Shown in pieces: positions 33,943 to 41,212 of a stretch of 53,637 nt of DNA. Source of the stretch: Perkinsus chesapeaki ATCC PRA-425 (Eukaryota; Protista; Perkinsozoa); NCBI GenBank assembly GCA_013115145.1, contig JAAPAO010000200.1, forward strand, positions 1-53,637. Reading direction: 5' to 3'. Position 1 is the stretch's first letter. Every line of letters begins with the position of its first letter. The position numbers and the translations under genes are program-made. Below the pieces are notes generated by a model that worked only from the letters and a program-made list of their open reading frames with translations, did not search any database and had not been told where the DNA came from.

Positions 33943-35808
33943 GTGCCGGCACGAACTCGAAGTCAGCCTTCCACATGGACTGTGCATGCGTGTGAAGGGT
34001 GTGTTTGCGTGCATGAAGGCCGTCAAAGCTGTGTTCTGTTGCACTCGGGTGATTTATTACCACTATTTCCTATGCCCCCCACCGTACCATCCAGAACATC
34101 GTTGGCCCGTGGCAGCTTCGTGAAAAAGCTTCCCGTTGTCGGAGCCATCTCTGGCCTCTGCAAAGACTTCGGGTGGAAGTTGATTTTCATGCTTCATTTC
34201 ACCAACCATTGGGCGAAAGGCTTCAGCTACATCATGATAGCCTCGACCATTCGATTCTACTTTCGTGCCATGAATGTGCCTGGTCCTGACATCGATCGCT
34301 ATTATTCTGTAATATTCATGCCTTGGGCCATGAAGCCTTGGTTAGGTGTGATCTCTGATTCGGTCCCTATTTTCGGCTATCATAAGTTGCCCTATATGAT
34401 GCTCATCAGCCTTCTTGGCCTTATAGGGACAATCGTGGCCGTCTCATTGAAACTGGTTGAGAGTAACGCCCCCATTGCTACCGTGGGTCTATTCTGTGCA
34501 AATCTTCAAATTATGGGTTATGACCTCTTCGCAGAAGCCGTCTATTCACGTCGTCTGGCGGTCGTTCCAGACTCCGGCCCAAGTCTTGTCAGTTACGTTT
34601 GGGCCGGTAATCAGCTTCTTGGTCTATTCGCTACACTGCTGGTTGGTTTCATCGTTGAACACGCTGATGGTGTTTGGGGCCTCGGTGGTGCGCAGTGGGC
34701 AATTCTTACTACTATCTTCACATCATCAACTGTTATTATCCCCGCATGGATGAACTTTTTCGAGGAACCCAAGGTGACCAAAGAAGAGGCAAGAGCGCAC
34801 CGCAAGCATTTATGGGGAAGCCAGAAAGAAGTTGCGATTCTGTCTGTCGTTGTTGGTCTTACAGCTGTCGGATATTCTGTCATCAACCTAGTTGCCAGAT
34901 CCAATACTGTAGCCTTCGTGACAGCTCTTGTGAGTGTCGCTCTACTCACTGGATTCGCTTTCTCTGTGATGCGACCTGTGATTGGTAAACTAATGTTGTT
35001 CAATGCAATATCACAAGTCACTATCATATCAGTTGGTGGCCCGTCGATCTATTTTTTCACTGATGACGAGCAACAGTATCCCGCCGGGCCTCACTTTTCT
35101 GACATTTTCTATGGTTCAGTTCTCGGCACGGTAGGGCAACTCTGCTCCGTTCTTGCTATTTTCGCCTTTGGCAAGTTTATGAAGAAGTGGAAGTACCGAA
35201 CAGTATACCTTGTCATGACGATTATGCTCGTTGTCATGCAGTCTGGTGATCCCATCATCTTTTCACGTCTTAACGTTCGTATTGGTATTCCAGACCATGT
35301 ATTTGCAGTGGGAAGCACTGCTCTAGTAGCCGCAGTGTCCATGATACAGTTCATGCCTGGTTTCCTGATTCTCTCTCACTTATGTCCTAAAAATATGGAG
35401 GCTACGATGTTCGCTTTGCTGGCATCTTTGTCAAACTACAGCCAAAACGTCACCCCTCCAATCGCTGGTTACATAAGTCAATTGCTTGGCGTCACACCGA
35501 GAGGGCTGCCTGGTGTTGATGAGTCGGAGACCTTTACTAATCTTTGGATCGTCTCATTGATATTGATGGGCCTTAGTATAACATCGATCTTCTTCTTATG
35601 GCTCATTCCTAATGCCAGAATGAATGAGCGCATTCTGATTGATGGTGATGACACATCAGCTACGGCTGGGTCTTTGGTGGAAAGGTGGTTCAAAGGAAAG
35701 AAAACTGGTGACACCAAGAGCGAGGTTAACTATGAAGTGAGCTCTGAGAAACCATTGGATCCTCCAAGTGATAAGGAGGATAAGAACAATACCGAACTCA
35801 TTCGTTAG
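33943..35808 (+). CDS. BT1-family folate/biopterin transporter (MFS); start uncertain (in-frame ATG at 34069 or an upstream exon)
   Basis: About 12 hydrophobic segments; BT1 signature PWAMKPWLGVISDSVPIFGYHKLPYM, and LCPKNMEATMFALLASLSN; long intact ORF. Confidence 0.88.
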   Translation: MPARTRSQPSTWTVHACEGCVCVHEGRQSCVLLHSGDLLPLFPMPPTVPSRTSLARGSFVKKLPVVGAISGLCKDFGWKLIFMLHFTNHWAKGFSYIMIASTIRFYFRAMNVPGPDIDRYYSVIFMPWAMKPWLGVISDSVPIFGYHKLPYMMLISLLGLIGTIVAVSLKLVESNAPIATVGLFCANLQIMGYDLFAEAVYSRRLAVVPDSGPSLVSYVWAGNQLLGLFATLLVGFIVEHADGVWGLGGAQWAILTTIFTSSTVIIPAWMNFFEEPKVTKEEARAHRKHLWGSQKEVAILSVVVGLTAVGYSVINLVARSNTVAFVTALVSVALLTGFAFSVMRPVIGKLMLFNAISQVTIISVGGPSIYFFTDDEQQYPAGPHFSDIFYGSVLGTVGQLCSVLAIFAFGKFMKKWKYRTVYLVMTIMLVVMQSGDPIIFSRLNVRIGIPDHVFAVGSTALVAAVSMIQFMPGFLILSHLCPKNMEATMFALLASLSNYSQNVTPPIAGYISQLLGVTPRGLPGVDESETFTNLWIVSLILMGLSITSIFFLWLIPNARMNERILIDGDDTSATAGSLVERWFKGKKTGDTKSEVNYEVSSEKPLDPPSDKEDKNNTELIR

Positions 35809-36794: not shown

Positions 36795-39179
36795 TCAAAG
36801 TGGGAGATGACTGACAGTAGCACCCATCGTGTGTAACGTCGGAGTTCCGCCTAGAGATGATGTGGTCATCTTAACAGCCAGCATGAGCTGTTTGGAATTC
36901 CAGTGTAGATGGGCTCTATTAGCTTCAAATGACATCTCCGCGAACTCGGCAGAGAGTAATGTTATTTGTTGAGAGAAGGGCAGGCCTGTTACTTTCTGCT
37001 TCGTGTCGCTAATATGTCGATGGTGGTAGATTTGTTCCGGAGGCAATTGTTAATATTATAAACACAAATCGTATAAATGGTAAAATGACCGGATATAGGC
37101 AATATTACGAGCGATTGCCGCCGCCTGATTGAGTGACTCTGCTTACACCAATGAGCCCGTTCAGGAACCACTGCAATCGAGAATAAATAAATGACTGGAA
37201 CTTGGGGTTCTCTATACTAGTTGGCGGCCAACGCAGAGAATCTGCGGCTACAAGAGCAGAACTTTCCATCAGTTCACCGAGACCGTGATCCTCCAGCGAA
37301 CATAGTAACTTCAAGTCATCTGTTTCTGTCCACGTCCAAGTTGGATCTTCTCTCCACGTAGGAGGCGCCCGACCAGTCTGTGCAGTAATCCTCTGTGATA
37401 CACTTGACAGATAAGAAGGATCACTTGTACTGAGGAGCAAAAATGGTCGTGAAATGTTGGCTGATGATGATGACGCTTACCTCAACCTTTCAATAGTGAG
37501 TCTTATAAGATAAAGCTGTCCGTACCGTCGCATAAAGTTCATTCCTTCTCCAATGAGATAATTATCCAAAGGAGTGCCGTCCGGAAAATGGGTTGGGAAT
37601 CTTTCAAGACTCTCCTCGCCTTGGGACATTCTACTTTCAATATCGTTAACAATCTGAGGAAGCCAGAGCCCGATAACCGCGCGCATTATGGGTGGAAGGG
37701 GCGGCTTACTTTCAGGTAACGGAAGAACATGACAACGTAAGCGTCGAAAATGTGACGTGGTAATCCTCGGAACTCTGGTGGAGATCGGGGTTGAGTGGCA
37801 TGCGGTCGTTCTCTGGGAATGTAGAAGCGCATCGCGAAGGCGAAAAATCTTCTTCTGGCATCGAGGGGAAAGAACTCCCAAACAGATCTGATGTAAGACA
37901 CTCCTCGTAAATGTGAAAATGGGGAAATGGAATTGTACCTTCCATGGAGCTCTACAAGCTCTTTCACACTCAACGTCTCCCAAATGTTTGGGATCCTCGT
38001 AGGTGATCGAGGGGCACCACTGCCATTGCTGTTGAACCCAAAGGAGGGCTGGCCTGAGCCGAAGGTAGGCGGAAGACCAACTTGAGCTCCATAGCCGCTC
38101 GAATTCCTCTGAAATTAAAAAACTGTTTCGAAAGTCTAGGTTAAGTCCAATCTTACCGAGGCTTGCCCGAAGCGTCCCATATTGACTTGGTTCATAGATT
38201 GCTGCAATTGACGGGGTACCCCTTGGGAGTCTAACACAGCGGTGCTACGTGTGATATATAGTGCAGGGTCCGAAGTACGACTGGGTTCACCGAGGGCCTG
38301 GAATCCAGTTGCCCCTCCGGTCTCCCTAGATACACCACCACCATCAGCGGGCCTTCCTCCCGAAGCAGCCTGGGCTTGAACAGACCAAGGTTGACGGGCC
38401 TCTTCAAGTAGGACGGCCAGTACTTCATATATTTTATGGTTTTCCATGCCCCTTACTAAGCGGGCACCATCACTTACAGCTAAGAACAACGTGGGTCGAT
38501 CGGGGCCTCTGATGAATTGACCGTTACCAAGATAGACGTAGACGTAGAATCCGCTTGAGGAAAGCGTGACACCAACAAGTAGTTCCCCTTGCATTTGCTT
38601 ATGTTGAGAGATAGGCGCTGTAGTCGAAGACATCGCCGGGATAGGCTCTGCACGAGGACTTGGATTTGGGGGTTGAGGACGTGCATAGGGATGAGTTAAG
38701 ATATTACTGCTAGTAGCCCTTTGTGGTGGTGGTGGAGGGTTGGGGTTAACGAAATCATTGTTGGTTACAGTTTTACGAGCAGCAGGAGAGTCAGCACTCA
38801 ACGTATCAGAAGTACGGGACAGACCGGGGGGCAGAATTCCCCCGTCAGCGTACAGTTGAAGAACGTCAGTACGCTTGGCCTCGGCCTGCCCTTGCCGAAG
38901 TCGCTCAACAGCGACCAGCGCCGCACTCGAACCGAATCGCATGTTCTCGAGATAGCAGGCATGAAGAGTTGGGCACGAGAGTATGTCATAGGCCTCCTTG
39001 ATGGTCTTAAAGAACTCCTCGGAGGCCTTCCTCAGTTCCTTGGACTCGGTATTCACCGTGCTCGGATGGAACCGTAGCGAAAGACTTAGATACGCCGATC
39101 GTATACGTTCCTTATCAGCCGACGGAGGTACTCCGAGAACTTCGAAGAGAGTTGGCGGTTGCGTTTTAGCATTCATCAT
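36795..39179 (-). CDS. J-like (DnaJ, HPD>HPS) domain protein with C-terminal CHD3/4/5-type SANT-like (DUF1086) and SLIDE-like region, about 5 exons
   Basis: N-terminus LFEVLGV...IRSAYLSLSLRFHPS...FKTIKEAYDILS is a J-domain. A phase-0 TCG|GTAAG...TTCAG|AGG splice links to the exon encoding ARRRFFAFAMRFYIP...FRGLPRHIFDAYVVMFFRYLK, then AAA|GTAAG...CTCAG| to HFPDGTP...RRYGQLYLIRLTI, then WTETDDLKLLCSLEDHGLG. A probable last exon ends at TGA 36795. Confidence 0.7.
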
Positions 39180-39279
39180 AATAAAAAATAAATGCTGAAA
39201 AAATCGTGAGCTATCTAACTGTTTCAGGCCTCAAGGGATACGCGTGCACAAGTCTCAGTGGTACATAGAGATATGGTAG

Positions 39280-41212
39280 CTAAGACGAAGAGCGAGTAAA
39301 CACAAAGGTAGTGTAGAAGTTGAAGACAGGCTCCTCTTCTGGCGACAATACAACGCCTGAATGCTTCCTTCGGAAAGTCCTAACCACGTCGCACTTCGTC
39401 TCGTAGTGGTCCAGAAACGCGCCGAAATTTGCGTGCAGCACGCACTTGAGATTTGATCCACGTGCTGCCGCGTCGAAGGACTTGAAGGGAACCATGTACT
39501 CAGCTTGGTCGTCAATGCTTTCGATAAGCCAAAACCGATATACCACACCCCATATAGAAGAACACATCTTATGATCGATGACCGCCGCCGCAGATTCACC
39601 TTGAGGAACTGCTGTACGCGTGCGGCAGAGTTTAGCCAACTCTTCCTTCTCGAAGGTCACACTATAGTGGTCATTGCCGAACTTCGCAGAACCGTCCGAA
39701 GATATCGTTGTATGCTTAAGCCTGTTAGATATGGTCTCGCTGCAGGGAATGGTACCGATGAAATTGCCACCAGGTTTTAGGACAGCTGAAACTCTGGCTA
39801 ATAGCTGCTGCGCGGCTTCCTCGCTGGACATAAGATAGTGCATAGCCAGTTGCATGGAGACAGTATCGAAAACTCTAGTGTCACCAGCAGCCGCAGCACA
39901 GCAAACTCCTTCTTGCTCGGCGATTAAGATTGCCTGAAAAAGTACAAATGAGTGATAGGTAAATTCCAGCTGCATGGAAAAGCGACACGGCGAGCCAATG
40001 CGACGCGACGTGGATCTGGAACGAGACCTGTGCGACTTCACCGACCTTCTTAAACGTTGTCTCGTCTTCCAGGTTGCCTTGGATGAATACTGCACGGTAC
40101 TGCAATCTCTGCTCGGATTCACCGTATCGGCGTTTGGCTTCTTCAATGGCCTCGGAAGATATATCAATACCGATGTACAACCTGCCAAAAGAGAATGCGA
40201 CGCCGAACGATCGCATAGCTAAATCAAGTTCTGGAACGTTTTCTCACCTCGGTTTGCACGCACTGTATTTCCACAAATCCTGCCCGTGTCCGCAGGCGAG
40301 GTCCAGGACCACCGGGCCCGACGGGGGTACGAACTTCTCTATCAGCACACGCTTCACCAAGTTGTTGTACTTCCTCAAGGCCCCAACTTCAGATTCATTT
40401 TGGGACACCTGGTTCCTGGTTTTACGGTCGTAGTGGTCCTGCACGTTGAAACTGGCCGCGGCTCCAGCGGCGGTGAAGAGGTTTTCGTAGCACAGAGCTG
40501 GCGCGGGCATGCCGTCGGCCATCGTAGCGAGCGACTCGGCATTACGGAGCAAATCTCGGACGGCCACGCTGAGTCCATGTGAATGGTGCCCAATCATTCT
40601 GGTATATTGGTTTCTCAGCAGGGAGGGATTCACATCAACCCTGAGGCCGCGCCCTTGGACCACGACGCGCCACCAGAGATCAGGGCCCTTGTTGAAACGG
40701 AAGACCGTGCAGGGCCCCTCGGGACCTTGGTAGTCTATCTGGGGAATGCAGACGTCCACTCGTAGATGAATGCTGCTTTCGGGCCGATATATCAGGTACC
40801 GCTCGACGATCTCCTCACCACCAGTGGGTGCCACAGTCGCCTCCGAAACGTCAACACTGGTCCAACCAGCTTCGTGTGCTTTGAGGGATTGCACTGCCTT
40901 CGAGGGTTCCTGTAGAGCTGCGTCATCCTTAGTATCGAAGGAGCCGCTAGGATCGATGAAGCAACAACCAGTCGCTCGGGATATGGGTAGACCGACAGAC
41001 TCACCGCTCATCTTGTCAGTGAACGTAACCAAGGATACCGATAACCGAACCTCCTCTTTCGGACGAGACGCCAGAGCCTTTATAAGACCGCCTTCGAGCC
41101 GCCGGAAGATGGGCATGTAGGAGGACCCTGAGAGCTCGCTCGGGGCGCACATTCGCAACTGTCTCGGAATTCCGTCTTTGGGCGGTTGCACTGCCGGGGT
41201 GGCGCTTGTCAT
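39280..41212 (-). CDS. RNMT: mRNA cap guanine-N7 methyltransferase (RNMT/Abd1-like) with ~250-aa N-terminal extension, 3 exons
   Basis: VQDHYD, LRKYNNLVKRVLI, VLDLACGHGQDLWKY, YIGIDIS, FDTVSMQLAMHY, LKPGGNFIGT, YRFWLIESID, EYMVPF. In-frame GT-AG introns near 40246-40184 and ~40046-39939. Confidence 0.9.

Follow-up and report, generated by a model that had tools for sequence, protein, structure and literature searches.

J-proteins confer specificity on Hsp70; those with a known action on chromatin are few. In J-like proteins without the His-Pro-Asp (HPD) tripeptide, such as Pam16/Tim16 and the plant DNAJ-related proteins, the J-fold is kept and the aspartate for Hsp70 stimulation is gone. Among chromatin remodelers, the SANT-SLIDE region of CHD4 is bipartite, with halves separated by about 150 disordered residues, binds double-stranded DNA at micromolar affinity and frees the ATPase from auto-inhibition (PMC9726900). 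J-proteins and remodelers meet in Arabidopsis, where the J-domain proteins DNAJ41 and its paralogues bind the SANT-SLIDE of PICKLE (PKL) in trans (preprint 10.64898/2026.08.25.747133). Here, we describe a nuclear gene of Perkinsus chesapeaki, a parasite of oysters and clams, in which a J-domain is followed by a tail that resembles such a SANT-SLIDE. The gene lies on the minus strand of contig JAAPAO010000200.1 from strain ATCC PRA-425, analyzed as a stretch of 53,637 nucleotides (hereafter the window).

The spliced minus-strand model at 39179–37105 is residue for residue the GenBank protein KAF4667938.1 (FOL47_003331; 622 residues; "J domain-containing protein"), labeled P0003 here. Full-length analyses of the P. 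chesapeaki protein were made on this record and the exons of the window were searched piecewise. Our reading, to which we assign a probability of roughly two in three, is that P0003 is a class C J-protein comprising a J-domain, a post-J segment, a Perkinsus-specific 70-residue domain and a 240-residue helical, divergent SANT-SLIDE of the CHD3/4/5 and PICKLE kind, without an ATPase. Literature searches returned no description of a J-domain plus SANT-SLIDE architecture, and databases name the protein "J domain-containing" or "hypothetical".

The tail and its remodeler look-alikes

An earlier interpretation made from the letters of the window (the sequence-only reading) had assigned the C-terminal half to a CHD-type SANT-SLIDE on the strength of the motif strings F..R.RF..FAMRF.IP, FRG..FDAYV.MF.RYL, FPDG, LIR and WTETDDLKLLCSLEDHGLG. 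All of these are found on the minus strand where that reading had put them, spread over exons 2b, 3 and 4. We searched a family profile of six sequences (A3) against 177,635 PDB sequences. The first match was the CHD4 SANT-SLIDE construct 8D4Y (8d4y_A) at an E-value of 0.009, which is borderline, as it refers to a single search and the tail was run against the PDB about eight times. Full-length CHD4 followed (6RYR, 6ryr_W, E-value of 0.068), and a profile restricted to Perkinsus gave CHD4 as its sole match (E-value of 0.6). The A3 alignment spans CHD4 residues 1431–1529, precisely the RKAFLNAIMRYGMP stretch that the sequence-only reading had quoted, and covers positions 37423–37871 of the window (minus strand, residues about 404–517, with introns 3 and 4 inside), corresponding to the SANT part of the CHD4 SANT-SLIDE. 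The stretch that would form the SLIDE half (37150–37365, minus strand, residues about 537–608; PPTW..W.WTETDDLKLL..LEDHGLG...WP...F.SF..RLQWF) is conserved with P0006 and P0010, two relatives from outside Perkinsus that are described below. The best Pfam trace on the tail also falls here, on WTETDDLKLL...HGLG, and is to HTH_CHD1_Hrp3 (PF23588; E-value of 0.12–0.13, 12.9 bits where the cut-off is 27).

Language-model and structural comparisons gave a similar set of names. By ESM Atlas features, the top three clusters were PF09111 SLIDE clusters (0.90, 0.89 and 0.88, with 189, 182 and 184 shared features), and clusters of CHDCT2, HTH_CHD1_Hrp3 and CHDII_SANT-like came next, in a comparison where one third of shuffled proteins also receive a consistent top ten. 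The ESMFold model of this protein in the Atlas itself matched a plant PF06461+PF08074+PF06465 cluster with a template modeling (TM) score of 0.69 over 203 residues (384–622) and two chordate CHD-II clusters with TM scores of 0.53 and 0.42, while unrelated rows scored 0.31 or less. VIA-align, run over 48,161 chains, ranked the DNA-binding domain of human CHD1 (4B4C) fourth (Z of 5.4, 109 residues) and first (Z of 5.5, 78 residues) for two separately modeled family members. Yeast Chd1, ISWI SANT, MTA1 SANT and CHD4 (8d4y_B; Z of 4.3, 73 residues, 19% identity) were also listed. Because several individually weak methods point to the same few remodeler domains, we consider it likely, as judged from profiles and predicted models, that the tail is a diverged SANT-SLIDE of the remodeler type with CHD subfamily II as its nearest kin. 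Support is stronger for the SANT half than for the SLIDE half.

A number of results weigh against this assignment and would be expected if the tail were a lineage-restricted helical domain unrelated to remodeler SANT-SLIDE, in a J-protein that binds its clients through an uncharacterized domain and need not be on chromatin. None of the Pfam SANT, SLIDE, CHDII_SANT-like and CHDCT2 families was significant on the full-length members, tails or half-tails of four proteins. A metagenome-only profile found nothing in the PDB, so that the CHD4 match vanishes, and a profile of the SLIDE half likewise found nothing; single tail sequences and exon pieces, including the tail of a full-length orthologue, gave no significant PDB match. 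Added to this is the borderline E-value of the CHD4 match itself. AlphaFold2 (AF2) models of the tail have a mean predicted local distance difference test (pLDDT) score of 62 for P. chesapeaki and 56 for P0006, are confident in the first ~90 residues only and are poor in the SLIDE half. When our own AF2 tail model was compared with the ESM Atlas, no CHD cluster was retrieved, and the structural match of the Atlas model was thus not reproduced. Foldseek, which the sequence-only reading had proposed as a check on the C-terminal half, found nothing significant in the PDB with either AF2 model; the leading rows were P450s at a TM score of about 0.2 for the P. chesapeaki model and, for the P0006 model, the HAND-SANT-SLIDE of ISW1a at an E-value of 1. 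The SANT matches of VIA-align cover the first half of the tail only and their Z of 4–5.5 lies within the noise band that the tool states for helical proteins; the highest Z was 5.7, the unrelated BrxC and COMMD score equally, and three-helix bundles are common. Finally, the C-terminal module has a pI of 6.3–8.7 and is near-neutral rather than strongly basic, so DNA binding by the tail is not implied.

We nevertheless regard an unrelated orphan domain as unlikely, since four different methods converge on the same small group of domains within very large libraries. CHD4 comes first of all the PDB sequences searched and does so on the SANT stretch, SLIDE and CHDCT2 lead by language-model features, the three CHD-II clusters of the Atlas model are separated from the next rows by a clear gap, and the CHD1 DNA-binding domain reaches the top ranks for two members modeled separately. 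The relatives add an independent hint of a chromatin setting in their AT-hook-like motifs. The CHD-type assignment of the sequence-only reading is partly supported, best in the SANT part, on the very stretch it had quoted, and draws no support from Pfam or, in its SLIDE half, from profile matches.

A second alternative is that the protein is a diverged J-plus-SANT co-chaperone of the Zuotin/DNAJC2/ZRF1/GlsA or DNAJC1 type, in which the SANT pair has drifted and was not derived from a remodeler. MTA1 and Myb-type SANT domains among the VIA-align matches are in keeping with such an origin. We find it improbable: neither the zuotin homology/RAC_head families nor Myb/SANT (PF00249) gave a Pfam match, even at E-values up to 10, in P0003, its P. 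olseni orthologue P0001, P0006 or P0010. The J-domain comes first in the chain, right at the N-terminus, no Zuotin-like protein came out of the exhaustive search for relatives, and the look-alikes by sequence, features and structure are remodeler SANT-SLIDE families and not DNAJC2 clusters.

One gene across five exons

The gene runs on the minus strand from an ATG at 39179 to a TAA at 37107–37105, in five exons separated by introns of 48, 51, 56 and 51 nt, each bounded by GT..AG. Exon 1 (38157–39179, residues 1–341 of P0003) is open from the ATG and encodes the J-domain, a conserved post-J helix, low-complexity linkers and the middle domain, ending at a GT donor at 38156–38155. Intron 1 (38109–38156, 48 nt, GTAAGA..CAG) holds an in-frame stop at 38136 and is removed in P0003. 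Exon 2a (37939–38108, residues 342–398, the last represented by the first two bases of its codon) encodes a G/S-rich linker and the start of the C-terminal module, with W384 at 37982–37980, and matches P0003. Intron 2 (37888–37938, 51 nt, GTACAA..CAG) is in frame and is removed in P0003 between HGR and SVWEFF. Exon 2b (37710–37887, residues 398–457) carries the first half of the SANT-like region (FFAFAMRFYIPR...FDAYVVMFFRYLK) and exon 3 (37481–37653, residues 458–515) the second half (FPDG...RRYGQLYLIRLTIERL), with intron 3 (37654–37709, 56 nt, GTAAGC..CAG) between them. Intron 4 (37430–37480, 51 nt, phase 2, GTAAGC..CAG) precedes exon 4 (37105–37429, residues 515–622 and the TAA), which encodes the SLIDE-like region and matches P0003. 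The in-frame introns that the sequence-only reading had postulated are therefore real GT..AG introns, although it had not listed the 51-nt intron at 37938–37888. Its 3' limit of 36795 was 310 nt too far, the coding sequence ending at 37105.

Comparison with P. olseni supports these junctions. Introns 2–4 occupy identical positions in the P. olseni locus L003, again with GT..AG ends (49, 57 and 52 nt), and are 39–53% identical to their counterparts, against 71–74% in the flanking ungapped exons. Intron 2 is 45% identical and the next exon 74%; its 49-nt counterpart in P. olseni must be spliced, because the reading frame would otherwise be lost. Intron 3 is 39% identical, and both exon 2b and exon 3 align to P. 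olseni at 74% nucleotide identity without gaps. The junction at intron 1 falls in a low-complexity region that is poorly alignable to P. olseni.

Full-length fused models also exist in P. olseni (P0001, 589 residues; P0011, 531 residues) and in P. marinus (P0012, 611 residues), and the C-terminus at the stop at 37105 is conserved in both species. We compared P. chesapeaki with P. olseni using Nei-Gojobori counts of nonsynonymous (pN) and synonymous (pS) differences, where pS is saturated at about 0.87. Values of pN were 0.15 for the J-domain (pS of 0.85), 0.058 for the middle domain (pS of 0.94) and 0.09 for the tail, made up of 0.08 in exon 2b (pS of 0.86), 0.10 in exon 3 (pS of 0.87) and 0.09 in exon 4 (pS of 0.87). 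All conserved parts of the protein are thus under strong purifying selection (pN of 0.06–0.15 against pS of about 0.87).

On one contig of the P. marinus ATCC 50983 assembly, the locus is split into two annotated genes (P0002, 348 residues, and P0013, 205 residues). This split speaks against a single product and probably reflects faulty annotation at intron 1, or allelic contigs. Among public RNA runs, none was listed that covers the stretch in P. chesapeaki, and two runs from this species yielded no reads on it. That the locus as a whole is two genes or transcripts, a 347-residue J-protein read from 39179 to the stop at 38136 with intron 1 retained and a separate downstream protein with the CHD-like tail, would agree with that contig and with the poorly alignable intron 1 junction, and is very unlikely, because fused models are found in three Perkinsus species including another P. 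marinus contig, introns and selection are shared, exons 1 and 2 are in phase across a canonical GTAAGA..CAG intron of 48 nt resembling the others of the gene, exon 2 offers no convincing start of its own before the conserved region, and the intron-less relatives P0006 and P0010 carry both parts in one uninterrupted open reading frame (ORF). On these comparisons of gene models, the J-domain and the tail are one conserved gene product, as the sequence-only reading had supposed, and the stop at 38136 that it had named as the possible end of a separate J-domain transcript sits inside an intron that is spliced out in the P0003 model.

The 3' flank at 36795–37104 lies beyond the conserved stop, outside the protein. 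It contains an 83-residue ORF (36795–37046) that matches no Pfam family, and a continuation of the coding sequence into this ORF was ruled out, since the stop at 37105 is conserved.

The J-domain, its lost aspartate and the wider family

The J-domain (38952–39149, minus strand, residues 11–76) matches Pfam DnaJ (PF00226) over residues 11–73 with an E-value of 1e-12 and 48.4 bits against a cut-off of 27.8. With phmmer, 51 PDB J-domains match at E-values of 1e-3 or lower, the best being DNAJB8 (1.6e-8). In place of HPD, the P. chesapeaki protein has HPS (H38-P39-S40; codons cat ccg agc) at 39060–39068, exactly where the sequence-only reading had located it, and in alignments this tripeptide lies opposite HPD in DNAJB8, E. 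coli DnaJ and HCG3. Its counterpart in both P. olseni and P. marinus is HPN, so the aspartate is gone in all three species. Helix II has also changed, with YLSL or YLDL in Perkinsus where the relatives and canonical J-domains carry basic residues. The uncultured relatives P0006, P0010 and P0017 retain HPD and the loss is therefore specific to the Perkinsus branch. The description of the J-domain as degenerate thus fits the three Perkinsus species and does not extend to the family.

A change of the HPD aspartate to asparagine in E. coli DnaJ (D35N) abolishes stimulation of DnaK. By analogy, the Perkinsus J-domain probably no longer stimulates the ATPase of Hsp70, and probably acts as a binding or scaffold surface. 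It is not decaying, because purifying selection persists. The J-domain is followed by a conserved post-J segment (38889–38954, minus strand, residues 76–97, Y..G...A...V[ED]..RQ), which is conserved from Perkinsus to P0006 and P0010 in alignment A7.

The middle domain (38376–38597, minus strand, residues 195–268, GVTLSSSGFYVYVYLGNGQFIRGPDRPTLFLAVSDGARLVRG...) is about 70 residues long, near-identical in the three Perkinsus species and missing from P0006 and P0010. It is more strongly constrained than any other part of the protein and has no Pfam match. It resembles a small beta-beta-beta-alpha unit. An AP2/ERF-type identity was considered and not supported, as no AP2 Pfam match was obtained and the domain resembles, in the ESM Atlas, unnamed clusters, YegP and the C-terminal domains of Mur ligases.

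The relatives outside Perkinsus are few. With the Perkinsus tail as the HMMER query, an exhaustive search through 1.84 billion representatives recovered one true non-Perkinsus relative, P0006 (403 residues, E-value of 4e-21), and a word search added P0010 (358 residues). Both combine a J-domain and the same tail in one uninterrupted ORF (5169–6380 of contig L001 and 1669–2745 of contig L002, respectively), and the contigs are ENA metagenome sequences that are gene-dense, apparently intron-less and of 44–46% GC content. Two further candidates of the exhaustive search, P0007 and P0008, are repeat proteins and were discarded as spurious, and a scan of Joint Genome Institute (JGI) metagenomes with family patterns gave 299 pattern matches and no relatives. 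The known family therefore consists of three Perkinsus species and two uncultured, intron-less eukaryotic lineages. In the linker, both relatives have an AT-hook-like KRGRPPGS (residues 112–121 of P0006 and 120–129 of P0010), which stays below threshold for Pfam AT_hook (E-value of 0.9).

A gene for a eukaryote-type cytosolic phenylalanyl-tRNA synthetase (PheRS) alpha subunit lies just upstream of the J/SANT-SLIDE gene on both L001 (3370–4908) and L002 (3–1028). Because this gene adjoins the J/SANT-SLIDE gene in both, the contigs are syntenic and from related eukaryotes. Most of the neighboring genes on the two contigs have no Pfam family.

In P. chesapeaki, the upstream neighbor, which shares the strand of the J-protein gene, encodes an mRNA cap guanine-N7 methyltransferase (PF03291, E-value of 2e-29) at 39280–41212, with at least two exons, and ends about 100 nt upstream of the ATG of the J-protein. 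A cap guanine-N7 methyltransferase gene is also directly upstream of the P. olseni orthologue. A pyrimidine tract and an AG about 14 nt before this ATG (39190–39200) may be a spliced-leader acceptor. Downstream and convergent is a gene of the BT1 (folate-biopterin transporter) family, a 621-residue ORF at 33943–35808 on the plus strand (E-value of 4e-62). Neither an SNF2 ATPase nor a chromodomain is found in the J-protein gene or in these neighboring genes, and the J-domain is the sole recognized domain upstream of the tail, which upholds the claim of a module without an ATPase.

Comparison of the HPD-bearing and HPD-less members suggests how such a protein might work. We propose that, in the ancestral protein, the tail and the AT-hook would anchor on nucleosomal or linker DNA, histones or a remodeler partner, and that the J-domain would recruit Hsp70 at the anchor site, where complexes bound to chromatin would be assembled or taken apart. 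The Perkinsus members have the conserved 70-residue domain in place of the AT-hook linker and have lost the HPD aspartate, leaving what is probably an Hsp70-independent scaffold or competitor. We infer chromatin targeting of the tail; the AT-hook-like motif in the HPD-bearing relatives fits a chromatin setting, and the near-neutral charge of the tail may be compatible with DNA, histone tails or a protein as the partner that it binds. None of the results supports the link to the aberrant chromatin of dinoflagellates that had been drawn from the sequence.

A bolder proposal, which we hold to be rather doubtful, is that the fusion is a 'Rosetta stone' for an ancient partnership between J-proteins and CHD3/4-type SANT-SLIDE, of which the pairing in trans reported for Arabidopsis PICKLE would be another case. 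The SANT-SLIDE would then primarily be a platform for J-protein/Hsp70 docking and chromatin sensing that can operate without an ATPase, the post-J helix (residues 76–97) would contact the SANT-SLIDE of its own chain, and the HPD-less Perkinsus form would act on chromatin independently of Hsp70 or compete with the CHD remodeler for the same sites.

If our reading of a J-protein with a divergent SANT-SLIDE tail is true, a J-protein targeted by an ATPase-free, remodeler-type SANT-SLIDE would be a new architecture, and it would provide an independent link between Hsp70 and CHD3/4-type remodelers, first reported from experiments in plants only in 2026. The HPD-bearing members from uncultured eukaryotes and the HPD-less members from Perkinsus form a natural experiment on the role of a J-fold that is unable to fire Hsp70. 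For Perkinsus, the protein is a conserved candidate chromatin factor behind what has so far been an uninformative annotation.

Comparison with known J-domain and SANT-SLIDE systems

The closest counterpart of the tail is the C-terminal SANT-SLIDE of the CHD-II remodelers (human CHD4 residues 1380–1810, PDB 8D4Y; PF06461/PF08074; plant PICKLE), which gave the best PDB profile and ESM Atlas structural matches. The FF.FA.RFYIPR...F.AYV..F.R..-type stretch of the family aligns to CHD4 1431–1529, and in both a helical SANT-like half precedes a half of the W..[ED][ED]D..LL...HG type. The Perkinsus protein lacks the chromodomains, PHD fingers and SNF2 ATPase of the CHD-II remodelers, its halves are contiguous whereas those of CHD4 are split by the disordered segment (PMC9726900), its similarity is too low for the Pfam models and its net charge is near neutral.

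Zuotin/DNAJC2 (ZRF1, MPP11, GlsA) and DNAJC1 (PMC6519820) also combine a J-domain with C-terminal SANT-type helical domains and link Hsp70 to chromatin or transcription. The Perkinsus protein differs in lacking the zuotin homology domain, the four-helix bundle and a canonical Myb/SANT match, and in its degenerate J-domain. In addition, its tail is closer to a remodeler SANT-SLIDE than to the tandem SANT domains of Zuotin/DNAJC2.

The HPD-less J-like proteins, Pam16/Tim16 among them, provide a parallel for a J-fold that is retained under selection despite loss of the aspartate. They have other partners and other locations, and the Perkinsus family is unlike them in having close HPD-bearing relatives, which tie the loss to the Perkinsus branch.

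The Arabidopsis DNAJ41/PICKLE system is built from separate proteins, its SANT-SLIDE belongs to an active remodeler, and its J-proteins have one more domain, which the preprint prints as 'DUF344'. What it shares with the Perkinsus protein is the pairing of a J-domain protein with a CHD3-type SANT-SLIDE on chromatin, which in Perkinsus would be joined in one polypeptide, in a 'Rosetta-stone' pattern.

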